A DNA stretch of 64,000 bases from IMGVR_UViG_3300027710_000011:62001-126000; one strand, 5' to 3'. Shown: positions 19,437 through 52,554, counted from the first letter of the stretch. Numbers and translations are program-made. The notes: generated by a model not told the origin, from the letters alone.

Positions 19437-19684
19437 ATCTTCTCCGGAGTATGACCTTCAGGCCAAGGATCACTGCTGTCGCTTAAAACATCAATCATCC
19501 GGTTACGTACATCGTCACCACGGTCGCTGTGGAATTCGATAATGACATCGCCTTGAGTCGAATATTTCGTATGGAAATCTCGCAGTGCTTCAAGAGAAAG
19601 CGAAGCCTCCGAGACGATATCCCAATTCTCTTTCGTGTCTTTCATCAACACGTAAGGCACGTTGGAGGCTTCTTGCATTTTCAC
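19433..19684 (-). CDS. Hypothetical protein, paralogue of the C-terminus of 19681..20340
   Basis: Shared W.I......EF....R...IDVLS..D.WPEG..PEK. Confidence 0.7.
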   Translation of the reverse strand: MKMQEASNVPYVLMKDTKENWDIVSEASLSLEALRDFHTKYSTQGDVIIEFHSDRGDDVRNRMIDVLSDSSDPWPEGHTPEKM

Positions 19685-20340
19685 ACCTTCTTTTCCGGTT
19701 TATAGCCTTCAGGCCAAGCGTCGACTTGGGACAAGACATCAATCGCGGCATTGCGATCAGCAACAGCAGACGGACGGTTGAATTCGAGAAGCACTTGATC
19801 ATTACTCTCATCGGTGGCAACCGAAGTTGTCACGTGTTTATTGATGATGTCCCAGACTTCTTCGTTGTTCTTGACGACCAGGGACGGGATACCTGGGGTT
19901 TCTTGCAGATCCATTTTGTCTTCCTTCTTGGTTGGTTGTAGGATATTTTTCATCCGAGCGGAGTCAAAGAACTTGACCTCGTTTGAAATAAGTTTGGGGA
20001 GCAAGGCATTGAGCCGCATCTTTCCAAAATGGAAAAACATCTCGCTGCTAGTTGGTTCAGGACGATGAGTTATAATTATCTCGTCAGCAATGGTCTCCAG
20101 CCAACGTCGTGCACCGCCTGCAGGGCGAATAGTTCTGATCTCCACGCCCTTTGCCAATTCACGCAACTTGTTCACGTAGATGGGTTCACGCAAAAAGTCT
20201 GCTTTGTTGGGAATTTCCCAGATGTTGAGGTAATCGCGATATGCGTCTTTGGTATGGTTGGACGAAAGATCGACAGTTTGCTGATCCAGCTGGTTAAGCT
20301 TTTGCAACAATGCTGGGAAATCAATTTGGCTGTTATTCAC
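19681..20340 (-). CDS. Hypothetical protein
   Basis: 219-aa ORF. Confidence 0.7.
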   Translation of the reverse strand: MNNSQIDFPALLQKLNQLDQQTVDLSSNHTKDAYRDYLNIWEIPNKADFLREPIYVNKLRELAKGVEIRTIRPAGGARRWLETIADEIIITHRPEPTSSEMFFHFGKMRLNALLPKLISNEVKFFDSARMKNILQPTKKEDKMDLQETPGIPSLVVKNNEEVWDIINKHVTTSVATDESNDQVLLEFNRPSAVADRNAAIDVLSQVDAWPEGYKPEKKV

Positions 20341-20381
20341 GTTAGTTTCTCTTGGTTAGTGAAATAAAAAAGAATAAACAC

Positions 20382-21475
20382 CTCCTTAAGTACACGGGTT
20401 AGATGCACTTAAGGAGATATTCGAATTCGCTTAGTTCTTCGGTACCGGTGGCCATGAGACTTTCGTCTCGCTGAACTGTGCTTGCGCACAACAGCAACGG
20501 TTCGTACTCCTCTACAAACGAATTCGGTATCTCTGTTTTATTCACGTGGCATCCGTACAAGTTGACCAACGATAAATTGGGGGCGGTCAAGCGTGCACTA
20601 TGGAATCACCAGCGTTATTAAGTCCGTATCTGGATCTTGGTCTGCCGCAACCGGCGTCGAATTGTTTTTGGAAGCTTTTTGGCGGGAGGATTGCAATACA
20701 GTAAGCTAATTAACTCACGTTGTAGACAAGCCCATCCATTTCTGGATGCAAGCAAGTCTAAGCTCAGCGCCGCAACGTGGCCACTGTATCCATGAGGGTG
20801 TTTTAAGAACCTGACTCGATATAATCCGTAGCATTATCCGATCGCATAGATGCTAACGTAGCCTCGGTTTCTTTAATCACATGCGCTCACCCCACCGGGT
20901 ACCTTCGATGCACAGTAGGCGCCGTACAGGCTGCGTCGGGAACTCGGCAAGGGCGGCCACAGCCCACAGTCCCGACTATCGCTGTAGAACCCTTGAACTT
21001 CAGTCGCCTGCAAACACTCGCTTTTGCGCAGCGTGCATTAAAACTGAAGCCAAGGCCCAAGACCTCCGATCTTAGAACGTCAATACGTACTGCCAGTATT
21101 GCGCGTGCTATGGCTTGATCGAACCGGAGGTCCTTTTTGTTTATCAACCCGATGAGGTACCGGGTCAAACGAATGCGTATCCCCACAGAACCTCCCTTCT
21201 GAGTTGACTTTTATTGACAGCAGATTTGGTTTGAATCTACTGCTTGGTTGTTGGTGGGCATGAGTAAACGAGGGGCCTTCTCGAATCCGATGTGGTCTGA
21301 ACCGTCACGGTATTGAAGCCTGGCAGCAAGTTACTCTTCCCGTTTTTTATTCTGTTGGTCAGGGCAACTAACCAACGTAATTGACTCTTTCTAGAGTTTT
21401 GTGTTGGCCGCAACCGGCCTTCGAATTGTGGGTTGGAAAGGGAGTAATGACCATGGTTGATCGTCACTACTCCCA
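20382..21475 (-). ncRNA. Putative large structured non-coding RNA (family not identified)
   Basis: More than 12 helices with G-U wobbles favouring the minus strand, three GNRA tetraloops, nested long-range pairings, a terminal 14-bp hairpin plus U-tract; no convincing ORF between 20340 and 21237. Confidence 0.6.
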
Positions 21476-21989
21476 ACAGCATTCGGATGCGCTCGTGCAG
21501 CACCATGCTGCGGGCTGAAAAGCGCTTCCAGCCTACGTTGCGTTGATGAATTCGCCTGGACTGCTCATGCGCTGCCGCATCATGATCGTTGTCCTGGCGC
21601 GCTTGCACTAATTCATCATTCTCGTATTCACAGACGTACCAAGGAGAGATGGGTTCTTCATTCTGAACCAACGCTTGTGCCAAGGCTTTTCCGAGTCGAA
21701 TGGCAATACTGTCATCCTCAGATAACAGCACTCTGAGAATATCGCGTTTTGCAGCAACTGATCTGGCATCCACCATGCGTTGAAACGTAGAGCCAGATTC
21801 TTGCTCACGAATAGCGTGTAGGAATTCTTCGCGCTTGCTGGCTTCTTGGTTAGCGACTTCGATCAGTTCACATCCGGCTTCTTGTACCAAGTGTCTGATC
21901 TTATCGATCAAAGCAGAATCAAGACCTGCCCCCACGATAAGGAGGCGTTTTGTTTCATCGCTGGAATTCACAACTACCTCCTTTCTCAT
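21237..21989 (-). CDS. Hypothetical protein whose 3' third overlaps the structured RNA
   Basis: RBS GAGG before start; first ~165 aa look protein-like, the tail overlaps hairpins. Confidence 0.6.
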   Translation of the reverse strand: MRKEVVVNSSDETKRLLIVGAGLDSALIDKIRHLVQEAGCELIEVANQEASKREEFLHAIREQESGSTFQRMVDARSVAAKRDILRVLLSEDDSIAIRLGKALAQALVQNEEPISPWYVCEYENDELVQARQDNDHDAAAHEQSRRIHQRNVGWKRFSARSMVLHERIRMLLGVVTINHGHYSLSNPQFEGRLRPTQNSRKSQLRWLVALTNRIKNGKSNLLPGFNTVTVQTTSDSRRPLVYSCPPTTKQ

Positions 21990-21992
21990 TGG

Positions 21993-22520
21993 TTAAACTT
22001 GATAGCAGCTCAGGTGAGCTACACGGTCGAAGAACTCTTCGCAGTCGTCGTATTTCTTAAGTATCAGACTTCCATCACCAAACGTGTGTTCGTACCTGTA
22101 TGGTAAGAACCCGCTCATGACGTAAAGCTTAAACAGTTCAAACTGATGAAAGATGTCTAGAGCCGATTGCTCAATAGTGATCATCTTATCGATCAGTGTT
22201 ACTGACGGATACGGCCAAGGGTTTTGTTTCACACCATTTTCTTGTCCGAGTAACTTAAGTTCTTCCTCGGCTTGACTCAAGTGCAAGTGAAGATACCGCG
22301 TCATGCTAGCGATGTCGCGGTACGCTGTTGCTCTGTAAGAACAGGCTTCAACGATTTGATCAATGATGAATTCAGGGCTGGCTGAGAACAGCGAATTAAT
22401 CGTTCTGATCTGTCGTGAAACATCAATCACGACGGTATGCGGAAGATTGTTAAAGTCATCTACCGCATCAGAGTAACTAATATCTTCTTGCACTGAAGCT
22501 CCTTTATTGACATAAGTCAA
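21993..22520 (-). CDS. Hypothetical protein
   Basis: 175-aa ORF, GFLPYRYEHTFGD..LILKKYD. Confidence 0.7.
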   Translation of the reverse strand: MTYVNKGASVQEDISYSDAVDDFNNLPHTVVIDVSRQIRTINSLFSASPEFIIDQIVEACSYRATAYRDIASMTRYLHLHLSQAEEELKLLGQENGVKQNPWPYPSVTLIDKMITIEQSALDIFHQFELFKLYVMSGFLPYRYEHTFGDGSLILKKYDDCEEFFDRVAHLSCYQV

Positions 22521-22801
22521 TCAGGAACAGTGTGTGTCCTGACCAACTCGATTGCGCGTTGCTTGATGAGGGTAGAACCCAGTTGCTTTGCGAATGCAAG
22601 CATTTCTGGATCTTCGCTCTTATCAATCTTAGACCAAGTGACGAACTGTTTACCCCAGGAAATCTGAGGAGTCAGATCGTTGTAGCTGAAAGCAGCCACT
22701 TGACTTTTCTTGAATTGTGCAGCCATGATTTTAATGTTGGTTAGGTGTCCACAAATGATGGTAAACACACAGTAAAAACTACACATAACACCAGCCTCCA
22801 A
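22517..22801 (-). CDS. Hypothetical protein (start uncertain)
   Basis: ORF with 4-nt overlap to the next gene. Confidence 0.55.
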   Translation of the reverse strand: MEAGVMCSFYCVFTIICGHLTNIKIMAAQFKKSQVAAFSYNDLTPQISWGKQFVTWSKIDKSEDPEMLAFAKQLGSTLIKQRAIELVRTHTVPD

Positions 22802-22902: not shown

Positions 22903-24939
22903 ATGGCTAACATTGTTACACGAGCCCTTGGCTTCGTGGATGTGTCTGAAGACGAGAAATACATCACAATCGGCGGTGTGAAGGCTGAGAATATCGGTAA
23001 GGACATTCTCCGCATGTGGGGAACGAATCGCATTGAGCAACACATGTTCAATGAGATTGGTGGACGCGTTATCAGGTTCCCAAAGTTCTTTGGTCCTGAG
23101 GTGCATTACATCCTCAGCAAGATTTTGAACAACAAGAAGGTCGTTACAAGTCGTGGAAGTATCAAGGACGCTTTGGCTCTCCTTGAACAAAACACTTGGA
23201 TGAAACGCATCACGCAAGAGTACGACCCTATTATTGATTTGGATGCCGTCAAGCTGTTCAATAAGACGCCGATGCCGCACCAGATTAATTTCTTCCAGAT
23301 GTATAGTCATCGTACGCAATCGTACGGACTGAACGGCTATCTCCTGTCCGCTGGCGCTGGCACTGGTAAGACACTGATGGCACTCATCTTGTCCGAAATG
23401 CTGCATGCTGACTACAAGGTGATTGTCTGTCCAAAGAATGCTGCTTACCGAGTGTGGGTAACTTCTTTGGCTGAAGAATACAAAGATCCTCGCAAGGCTT
23501 GGGTAATCGCAGACGGTAAGGCTTACGAAGGTCAGAAGTACATTGTCTGTCATTACGAAGGTTTGGAAAAGCTCAAGGCCATTGCTGGCCGCCTTTCCGG
23601 ACGCGTGATCATCCCGCTTGATGAGTCTCACAATTTGAACAGTGACGATTCCTTGCGGACTCAATACTTCATCGACATCTGTCGCTCCATCCGTAACGTA
23701 CACGTGCTGTGGATGTCGGGTACACCAGTGAAAGCTCTTGGGTACGAAAGCATTCCACTGTTGCGCTCCATTGATCCGCTCTTCACCGATGAAGTGGAAG
23801 CGCGGTTCAAGAAGATCTATGGGCGTGATGCCACAAAGGCTTTGGACATCTTGCGTCAACGTATCGGCATGATTTCTTTCCACGTGGAAAGCTCTGCGGT
23901 TGTGACAAATGAGACGACGACTCACAATCGGATGATCAGTATCCCGAACGGTAAGATATACACGTTGGATGCTGTGCGTACCGAGATGCAGAAGTTCATT
24001 GAAACTCGTCTGAAATTCTACTTGGGCGAGAGCAAGAGTTTCAAGAAAACTTATGAGCGAGCGCTTGATATCTACGAAGACACGATCAAGGATAATGGCC
24101 TGCTGTCTAAAGACAGTGAAGAACGTCGTGCATTCAAGACGTACAAGCGCTACATCGAGCTGATCTCTTCCGGCTTTGATCCAATGAGTATGGCTAAGGA
24201 AGCCAAGTATTGCAATCATTTCGAGAAGAACATCATTGCTCCTACTTTGCCAAAAGACTTGAAGAAGGCTTTCATGAGCGCCAAGTCTGTGGTGAAGTAT
24301 CCGCAGCTTAAGGTACTTGGTGAAGCACTCGGTGGTGTTCTGAGCAAGAAGCGTGTTCAATGTCACTTGGACATGATTCCGCATATGGGACTAGAAAAGA
24401 TCATCAACGCGGCTTCGAAGAAGACCATCATCTTCTCGAGTTACGTTGAGGTGGTGGATGCAATCACGAAGTACCTGAAGGGTAAGGGTTTCAATCCCAT
24501 TGCCGTACACGCAAGTAGTGGTCAGGAACTCTCAGCATCCGTTAACCAGTTCTTCAAAGATCCGAATCTCAATCCGTTGGTGGCGACTTTCCAATCGCTA
24601 TCGACAGCAGTTCCGATTATCTGCGCGAACTGTACTGTGTTCACGAACATGCCGTTCCGTGAATACGAGATTACACAAGCTCGTGCTCGCACGAATCGTT
24701 TGGGTCAAGATACTGCTGTTGAGTACTACAACACGTACCTTGACACTGGTAAAGAGCCCAACGTCTCCACCCGCTCACGTGACATCCTGGAATGGTCGCG
24801 CCAACAAGTTGCAGCCATCCTTGGCCAAGACTATGGCGGCACTATTACAGCTGAAATGGTGAACTCGATGGAGAGTTTGACAGAGGACTACACTCCTTTC
24901 GAGATCAGTCTCGCTATGGAGGAATACGCAGACTTTTAA
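22903..24939 (+). CDS. SNF2-like (SF2) helicase
   Basis: PMPHQ, SAGAGTGKT, VCPK, IPLDESH, MSGTP, IFSSY and QARARTNRLGQ motifs. Confidence 0.88.
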   Translation: MANIVTRALGFVDVSEDEKYITIGGVKAENIGKDILRMWGTNRIEQHMFNEIGGRVIRFPKFFGPEVHYILSKILNNKKVVTSRGSIKDALALLEQNTWMKRITQEYDPIIDLDAVKLFNKTPMPHQINFFQMYSHRTQSYGLNGYLLSAGAGTGKTLMALILSEMLHADYKVIVCPKNAAYRVWVTSLAEEYKDPRKAWVIADGKAYEGQKYIVCHYEGLEKLKAIAGRLSGRVIIPLDESHNLNSDDSLRTQYFIDICRSIRNVHVLWMSGTPVKALGYESIPLLRSIDPLFTDEVEARFKKIYGRDATKALDILRQRIGMISFHVESSAVVTNETTTHNRMISIPNGKIYTLDAVRTEMQKFIETRLKFYLGESKSFKKTYERALDIYEDTIKDNGLLSKDSEERRAFKTYKRYIELISSGFDPMSMAKEAKYCNHFEKNIIAPTLPKDLKKAFMSAKSVVKYPQLKVLGEALGGVLSKKRVQCHLDMIPHMGLEKIINAASKKTIIFSSYVEVVDAITKYLKGKGFNPIAVHASSGQELSASVNQFFKDPNLNPLVATFQSLSTAVPIICANCTVFTNMPFREYEITQARARTNRLGQDTAVEYYNTYLDTGKEPNVSTRSRDILEWSRQQVAAILGQDYGGTITAEMVNSMESLTEDYTPFEISLAMEEYADF

Positions 24940-50132: not shown

Positions 50133-50207
50133 TGGTGCCGGATATCTGGATCGAACAGATGACCTACCGCTTACAAGGCGGTTGCTCTACCACTGAGCTA
50201 AGCCGGC
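50133..50207 (-). tRNA. tRNA-Thr(UGU)
   Basis: Full cloverleaf GCCGGCTTAGCTCAGTGGTAGAGC...CTTGTAA...TTCGATC...GGCACCA with encoded CCA. Confidence 0.95.
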
Positions 50208-52447: not shown

Positions 52448-52554
52448 TGGCGCTACTTGGAATCGAACCAAGCACCTGCCTTTCTGTCGTAGCTAACGCA
52501 GCAGCGTAATCGCAGGGACAGATCGGTTGCTCTAGCCATCTGAGCTATAGCGCC
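52448..52554 (-). ncRNA. tRNA-like RNA with expanded anticodon domain
   Basis: Perfect acceptor, D and T arms; 33 extra nt in the anticodon region. Confidence 0.75.

Follow-up and report, generated by a model that had tools for sequence, protein, structure and literature searches.

A duplicated three-hairpin RNA module flanking a small gene in an uncultured jumbo phage and related phages

Two motifs of about 30 bases in the genome of an uncultured jumbo phage are the most conserved cores of two homologous copies of a three-hairpin RNA domain. The copies sit before and after a small gene, inside a highly structured minus-strand transcript of roughly 1.1 kb, and the arrangement recurs in related phages but matches no catalogued RNA family. 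The DNA analyzed (here termed the window) is a 64,000-nt stretch, bases 62001-126000 of a 276,772-bp IMG/VR virus record rated 100% complete. An earlier note had reported the two motifs, their spacing of 763 nt and the absence of other copies, and this observation was confirmed. Its interpretation, a repeated RNA module for protein binding or self-assembly or a pair of processing sites, was supported only in part, as set out below.

Kilobase-sized RNAs with dozens of covarying pairs are rare, and none has been catalogued for phiKZ-like jumbo phages, in which transcription and translation are physically separated so that RNA-level control is expected to matter. The locus combines an invariant 12-nt hairpin present twice, a candidate binding protein encoded next to it, a small unannotated gene and natural one-module and two-module variants. 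It also shows that an apparent 1.1-kb noncoding gap hides a small protein gene.

The locus and its distribution among phages

The features of the locus, all on the minus strand, are as follows.

21237..21989 (-), upstream gene P0001, with a weak Rossmann-like N-terminus and a conserved arginine-rich C-terminal region that ends near 21480
20365..21480 (-), the whole conserved structured transcript region, comprising two leaders, the small ORF, a 3' domain and the terminator
21440..21474 (-), hairpin P0 (15-nt arms), directly 5' of module A and at the end of the conserved part of the upstream gene
21407..21438 (-), motif copy A (5' copy in the RNA), reading UUCCAA-CCC-ACAAUUCGA-AG-GCCGGUUGCGGC
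21343..21433 (-), module A, the full three-hairpin domain, with H1 at 21419..21406, H2 at 21397..21384, H3 at 21376..21354 and the single-stranded blocks ACAAUUCGAAG, UCAAUUAC and AGAAUAAA
20887..21186 (-), small ORF P0004 (99 aa, GTG start), between the two modules and preceded by the Shine-Dalgarno (SD) block GGGAGG at 21196..21191
20935..20976 (-), a covarying RNA helix inside the ORF (GUCGGGAC / GUUCCCGAC), followed by the invariant block GCCUGUACGGC at 20931..20921
20644..20673 (-), motif copy B (3' copy in the RNA), reading UUCCAA-AA-ACAAUUCGA-C-GCCGGUUGCGGC
20534..20670 (-), module B, a homologous three-hairpin domain with a longer hairpin 3, with H1 at 20655..20644, H2 at about 20638..20620 and GAAUAAA at 20543..20537
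20365..20422 (-), an intrinsic terminator, with a 20-pair hairpin at 20422..20376 followed by a U run (ATTCTTTTTT) and the invariant UCUCCUU in its 5' arm
19681..20340 (-), downstream gene P0002, an ORFan behind module B and the terminator

On the plus strand the copies read GCCGCAACCGGC-G-TCGAATTGT-TT-TTGGAA at 20644-20673 and GCCGCAACCGGC-CT-TCGAATTGT-GGG-TTGGAA at 21407-21438. The 21-base core pattern GCCGCAACCGGC-N1-3-TCGAATTGT matched exactly twice in the window, whereas 100 dinucleotide-preserving shuffles gave 0.00 matches. A fuzzy search of the whole genome on both strands and a covariance-model search of the genome each found only these two copies. A partial third occurrence of the word GCCGCAAC, reading GCGCCGCAACGTGGCC, lies at 20767-20782 (+) inside the central domain, but it lacks the other blocks and was not found by the model. 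A motif scan of JGI metagenomes returned only the source contig, and a scan of 185,579 prokaryote genomes returned two chance-level hits, at least one of them (locus L012) inside a long ORF of a bacterial MAG contig. Exact and degenerate scans of IMG/VR gave none, or 11 chance-level single hits, one of which (locus L032) lies inside a 775-aa ORF.

The motifs lie in an operon of small minus-strand genes that diverges from a helicase gene at 22903-24939 (+). The helicase is 39-46% identical to helicases of Xanthomonas phage LucasX, Klebsiella phage Eowyn and phiKZ-like Pseudomonas phages, and the genome encodes a PhuZ-type tubulin-like protein 35% identical to that of Eowyn (E value of 9e-50). 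On this evidence the source is an uncultured jumbo phage of the phiKZ/Chimalliviridae kind. Several helicase homologs of 908-1079 aa carry a LAGLIDADG_3 (PF14528) insert, which is intein-like, and phiKZ-like phages match the helicase in two pieces. In the cultured relatives LucasX and Eowyn there was no large gap beside the helicase gene, and the covariance model found no module anywhere in either genome. Blastn of the region against 50,697 phage records and 72,556 plasmids gave no match, and peptide-word searches of IMG/VR with P0002, the helicase and P0004 found no relatives.

A word search with P0001, however, found a 75%-identical protein on a 276,853-bp contig (locus L005, the closest relative). 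The two phages are about 70-85% identical in flanking genes but 92-100% identical in nucleotides from about 21660 down to the terminator. Homology stops exactly at the terminator (window 20340-20365, L005 from 7595 onward), where the next gene is the ORFan P0002 in the window and a different gene in L005. The first gene of the leftward operon (69 aa, about 22519-22725, minus strand) is also about 95% identical in nucleotides between the window and L005, while its neighbors are 70-85% identical. Helicase homologs at 86-55% identity led to further loci (L014, L015, L016/L017, L018, L019/L021, L022 and L025), and homologs of the small ORF led to L026 and L027. Relatives with helicases at least 72% identical (L014-L019), and L027, have a 0.9-1.1-kb ORF-poor gap at the same place, L026 is a 1,747-bp contig that ends inside the region of module B, and L022 and L025 have a gap of about 410 nt. 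The orthologous locus was thus found in ten related metagenomic phage lineages. Eight of these, like the window, carry both copies, 688-772 nt apart, and the two more distant lineages L022 and L025 carry one. The earlier note had named absence from orthologous loci, or abundance elsewhere in the genome as a plain DNA repeat, as grounds for abandoning its reading, and neither was observed. Sequencing runs from freshwater, sediment, fish gut and wastewater held only two sequence types, window-like and L005-like, and only as contigs, and thus gave no RNA ends, no expression levels and no extra diversity. One wastewater RNA-Seq library held a 170-nt contig identical to 20947-21114.

Structure and conservation of the module

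Comparison of 20 instances from these lineages showed that the three blocks of the motif are not equally conserved. GCCGGUUGCGGC and ACAAUUCGA are conserved in relatives, but UUCCAA is confined to the window and L005. The core CCGGUYGCGG of hairpin H1 (GCCG-GUUG-CGGC) is invariant, the outer stem pair varies as G-C, A-U, C-G or G.U, and the block 5' of the hairpin reads A(C/A)AA(U/C)NNGA. The note was therefore correct in placing an RNA-level repeat with a real GC hairpin on the minus strand. Its T-loop reading was not supported, since the window copies do contain UUCGA next to a GC stem but the pentamer reads UUCGA, CUCGA, UCCGA, GCCGA, UCUGA or UUAGA among the 20 instances, and no flanking complementary arms close it.

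The similarity between the copies extends well beyond the 30 nt of the note. The domain reads ACAAYUCGA, H1, a short linker, a second hairpin H2 of variable sequence, the block (U)CAAUUAAG, a third hairpin H3 of variable length and (A)GAAUAAA, and spans 91-94 nt in copy A and 114-139 nt in copy B. For the seven A copies, RNAalifold predicted the three hairpins, with 95.8% of cells paired and 9 of 17 pairs changed on both sides, compared with 3.2 such pairs in shuffles and at most 2 in slid controls. A covariance model built from A copies only (R1) scored module A of the window at 99.9 bits and found module B of the window full length (model positions 1-94) at 25 bits (E value of 4e-4). It found six of the seven B copies then in hand, plus that of L026, full length (window, L005, L014, L015, L016, L018 and L026; 25-42 bits, E values from 7e-9 to 4e-4), together with one weaker copy in L022 and a partial one in L025. 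The B copies of L019 and L027 fell below the model's threshold, although the core is present in both. On the 14 model-aligned instances, 91.9% of cells were paired and 13 of 17 pairs carried compensatory changes, compared with at most 5 such pairs in slid controls; the covariation score was 0.519, against 0.170 for shuffles and at most 0.078 for slid pairs. The three inner pairs of H1 never varied, whereas every pair of H2 and H3 did. No closing helix for the module was established; a possible P1 helix (CUACCC/GGGUAG, CUCCC/GGGAG, CUUUCC/GGGAAG) was read by eye only and competes with a downstream helix predicted by alifold. Since the G.U pairs in H1 would be C.A mismatches on the other strand, the constraint acts on minus-sense RNA and not on DNA.

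These data essentially exclude a plain DNA-level repeat, whether the remnant of a duplication, att-like sites of an inserted element or a DNA-binding site. Direct repeats flanking a roughly 730-bp segment do look like insertion scars, and the break in homology with L005 exactly at the terminator shows that recombination occurs here. However, both copies are kept in nine lineages whose helicases are only 72-90% identical, all nine carry the segment between the copies, pairing is preserved on one strand by compensatory and G.U changes, the locus has no integrase or transposase, and the motif was not found beyond chance elsewhere in the genome or in the collections scanned.

Searches against Rfam 15, including GOLLD, ROOL, group I and II introns, tRNA-like elements and riboswitches, gave no match. 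At the gathering threshold the window gave only two tRNA hits elsewhere, the region 19800-22000 at E values up to 10 gave one 18-nt fragment hit to a plastid group II D5 model (17.7 bits against a threshold of 61), and four relatives at E values up to 1 gave nothing in the region. The lower stem of the D5 fragment does not pair, no intron core was detected, and the upstream gene ends at varying points before or within module A with no second exon following, so group I and group II introns were rejected. The element is not a CRISPR array.

The small gene and the surrounding transcript

Between P0001 and P0002 no long ORF exists, and all three stop codons occur in all six frames of 20341-21236 outside the small ORF, which rules out an alternative genetic code for the gap. 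The stretch between the copies nevertheless holds a conserved small gene that the note had missed. About 215 nt downstream of module A stands an invariant AGAA(A/G)GGAGGU block, followed after 3-6 nt by GUG, and the frame that starts there is open for 93-127 codons in all nine lineages, while the other two frames over the same span hold 2-7 stops each. The codons of a conserved GLGF motif differ only at third positions among lineages, although overall codon periodicity is weak. A profile of the family found only four related clusters among 1.84 billion representative proteins, and nothing similar was found in Pfam or PHROGs. The 3' half of the ORF doubles as RNA structure, since the helix GUCGGGAC/GUUCCCGAC covaries (CAUGA/UCAUG in L014, GUCAC/GUGAC in L016; columns 545-553 with 577-586 and 590-600 of the seven-lineage alignment) next to the invariant GCCUGUACGGC. 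We conclude that the gap holds a real, clade-restricted small gene inside a heavily structured transcript.

Whole-transcript alifold on seven lineages gave 120 stringent pairs, 42 of them with compensatory changes, and hairpin P0, an inverted repeat in the window, was kept with covariation (columns 18-25 with 50-57). With ribosum scoring the energy was -252 kcal/mol, against -102 to -130 kcal/mol for column-shuffled alignments. The antisense energy of -240 kcal/mol was too close to be decisive, and the strand was therefore taken from gene orientation, the terminator, the SD and the G.U pairs.

The conserved part of the upstream protein ends in the arginine-rich stretch RRxHxxNVGWKRFSxRxxxxHERIR, and the protein is syntenic in all lineages. 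The stop codon of the gene lies 60-84 nt before H1 in three lineages, and its frame runs into module A in four lineages, including the window. In the window and L005 the gene has lost its usual stop and reads on through P0 and module A (21237-21480), and substitutions between the two in that tail are mostly non-synonymous, so the overlap is a read-through tail that is not conserved in more distant lineages. An AlphaFold2 model of the protein from 8 sequences had a pLDDT of 52 and was not used, so no fold search was run, and Pfam detected no RNA-binding domain.

Copy A lies about 230 nt upstream of the start codon of P0004, and copy B about 230 nt downstream of its stop, about 110 nt upstream of the terminator and about 315 nt upstream of the next gene. 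Across lineages these distances to the next start codon are conserved, at 199-238 nt for A and about 260-340 nt for B. In the window, L005 and L015, module B stands upstream of a U-tract terminator; in the other lineages it stands upstream of a conserved terminal hairpin without a U run. The one-module relatives keep the module, a 3' domain and the same terminal hairpin in the leader of the next gene. That gene encodes an RNA_pol_A_CTD-domain protein in L015, L016, L018, L022 and L025. The duplication is old, and the A unit looks like an old duplication of the B unit placed in front of an added small gene.

Possible roles of the two modules

The duplicated domain, its covariation and its placement around P0004 are shown by the analysis; what the modules do is inferred. 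We suggest that each copy is a cis-acting leader element and that the two are equivalent recognition sites for one effector, protein or ligand, which would control translation of the small ORF at copy A and read-through of the terminator or terminal hairpin into the next gene at copy B. The contrast between a sequence-frozen H1 with its 5' flank and the freely covarying H2 and H3 suggests that H1 is read by something sequence specific, with H2 and H3 being structural. The effector is most likely an RNA-binding protein, and the nearest candidate is the arginine-rich-tailed protein encoded immediately upstream in every lineage. This reading is tentative (probability of about 0.42), as there is no direct evidence of any binding partner, and the absence of a U run behind module B in four lineages means that a termination switch cannot be general. 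A broader version is possible but less likely, in which the modules form a previously undescribed class of phage regulatory RNA, an internally duplicated three-hairpin sensor domain coupling expression of two consecutive early genes of nucleus-forming-type jumbo phages to one effector (a new riboswitch ligand or a dedicated arginine-rich phage protein) and embedded in a roughly 1.1-kb RNA that is both folded scaffold and mRNA.

In architecture the motif most resembles the lambda nutL/nutR sites (boxA plus the boxB hairpin, bound by the arginine-rich motif of N protein). Both have two copies per phage of a short linear block followed after a small spacer by a short GC hairpin of fixed sequence, the copies differ mainly in the spacers and act as RNA in cis, and an arginine-rich small protein is encoded next to a site. 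Here, however, both copies lie on one transcript in the same operon rather than in divergent operons, the linear block reads ACAAYUCGA with no boxA consensus (CGCUCUUA-like), the 4-5-bp stem carries the tetranucleotide loop GUUG or GUCG rather than a GNRA-like pentaloop, the motif is part of a 91-139-nt domain, and the phage is expected to use its own RNA polymerases. Peptide binding and antitermination were not assayed. The HK022 putL/putR RNAs are likewise two homologous multi-hairpin elements per phage, acting in cis on downstream terminators, but put has two stems of about 70 nt and shares no sequence with this module.

The note's proposal of self-assembly corresponds to a less likely alternative, in which the invariant H1 hairpins and their flanks make tertiary contacts, either within one molecule to close the roughly 700-nt central domain or between molecules, giving a pseudo-symmetric fold or a homo-oligomer like the ornate RNAs GOLLD and ROOL. 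The extent of structure favors this, invariant hairpin loops are typical of tertiary contacts, most A copies carry CAAC, complementary to the GUUG loop, directly 3' of H1, and RNA-only multimers are documented for large phage-associated RNAs (bioRxiv 10.1101/2024.12.08.627333). Like GOLLD and ROOL, this RNA is roughly kilobase-sized, phage-borne, heavily base-paired with much covariation and of unknown function. Unlike those noncoding RNAs, it carries a translated-looking ORF with a strong SD and an internally duplicated domain, and it is confined to one small clade of jumbo phages. CAAC is AAAC in L026 and L027 and is absent from B copies, and a loop-to-CAAC pseudoknot in cis was rejected on this ground and on geometry. 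No conserved receptor sequence for the loop was found, and the single-module relatives function without a second copy.

The note's proposal of identical processing sites is somewhat less likely again. In this view a host RNase E-type enzyme or a phage nuclease would cut in the AU-rich single-stranded blocks (ACAA/UUCGA, CAA/UUAAG, GAAUAAA), releasing a roughly 0.7-0.77-kb monocistronic RNA for the small gene, in the way homologous RNase III sites flank T7 early genes. The modules flank the gene roughly symmetrically in the window (231 and 233 nt), although the downstream distance falls to about 105-125 nt in L015 and L016; AU-rich single strands next to stable hairpins are preferred by RNase E, and the only RNA-Seq contig recovered lies between the modules. 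Against this, the single-module relatives have nothing to excise, and the strict invariance of H1 is not needed for RNase E. The T7 early-region sites are also structured elements repeated between genes of one polycistronic transcript, but they are long irregular hairpins of about 20 bp or more, whereas the three hairpins here (4-7 bp, with conserved single strands) are far too short for RNase III. Cleavage was not tested. Protein binding, self-assembly and processing all remain possible, and none was tested, because the available sequencing runs are contigs only and give no RNA ends.

Tandem ligand-sensing aptamers, each with its own expression platform (the SD of the small ORF for copy A, the terminator or terminal hairpin for copy B), are also unlikely but are suggested by about 35 conserved unpaired nucleotides lying between freely covarying stems, the usual signature of an aptamer, and by the position of each copy in a leader upstream of an SD or a terminator. 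Ligand binding was not measured, no closing P1 helix or compact junction was established, the module-to-platform distance of 100-190 nt is long for a riboswitch, there is no metabolic gene context, and Rfam has no match. SD-complementary segments do exist. The SD block AAGGAGG (about 21197..21191, minus strand; alignment columns 321-327) is complementary to the invariant UCUCCUU (about 20416..20410, minus strand; columns 1158-1164) in all seven aligned lineages, and because UCUCCUU is also the 5' arm of the terminator or terminal hairpin, alternative pairings are possible. In addition, hairpin 3 of module B (20545-20615, minus strand, in the window; 7340-7400 in L005) exists in three unrelated versions that are distributed mosaically. 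The version in L005, L014, L016 and L018 contains CAGAACCUC, which is complementary to GAGGUUCUG of the SD block, while the window carries another version.

Elsewhere in the window, one of the two Rfam tRNA hits, at 52448-52554 (-), is 107 nt long (40.7 bits) and was not called by ARAGORN. It lies 2.2 kb from a normal tRNA-Thr (50133-50207) and may be a tRNA with an insert or intron.
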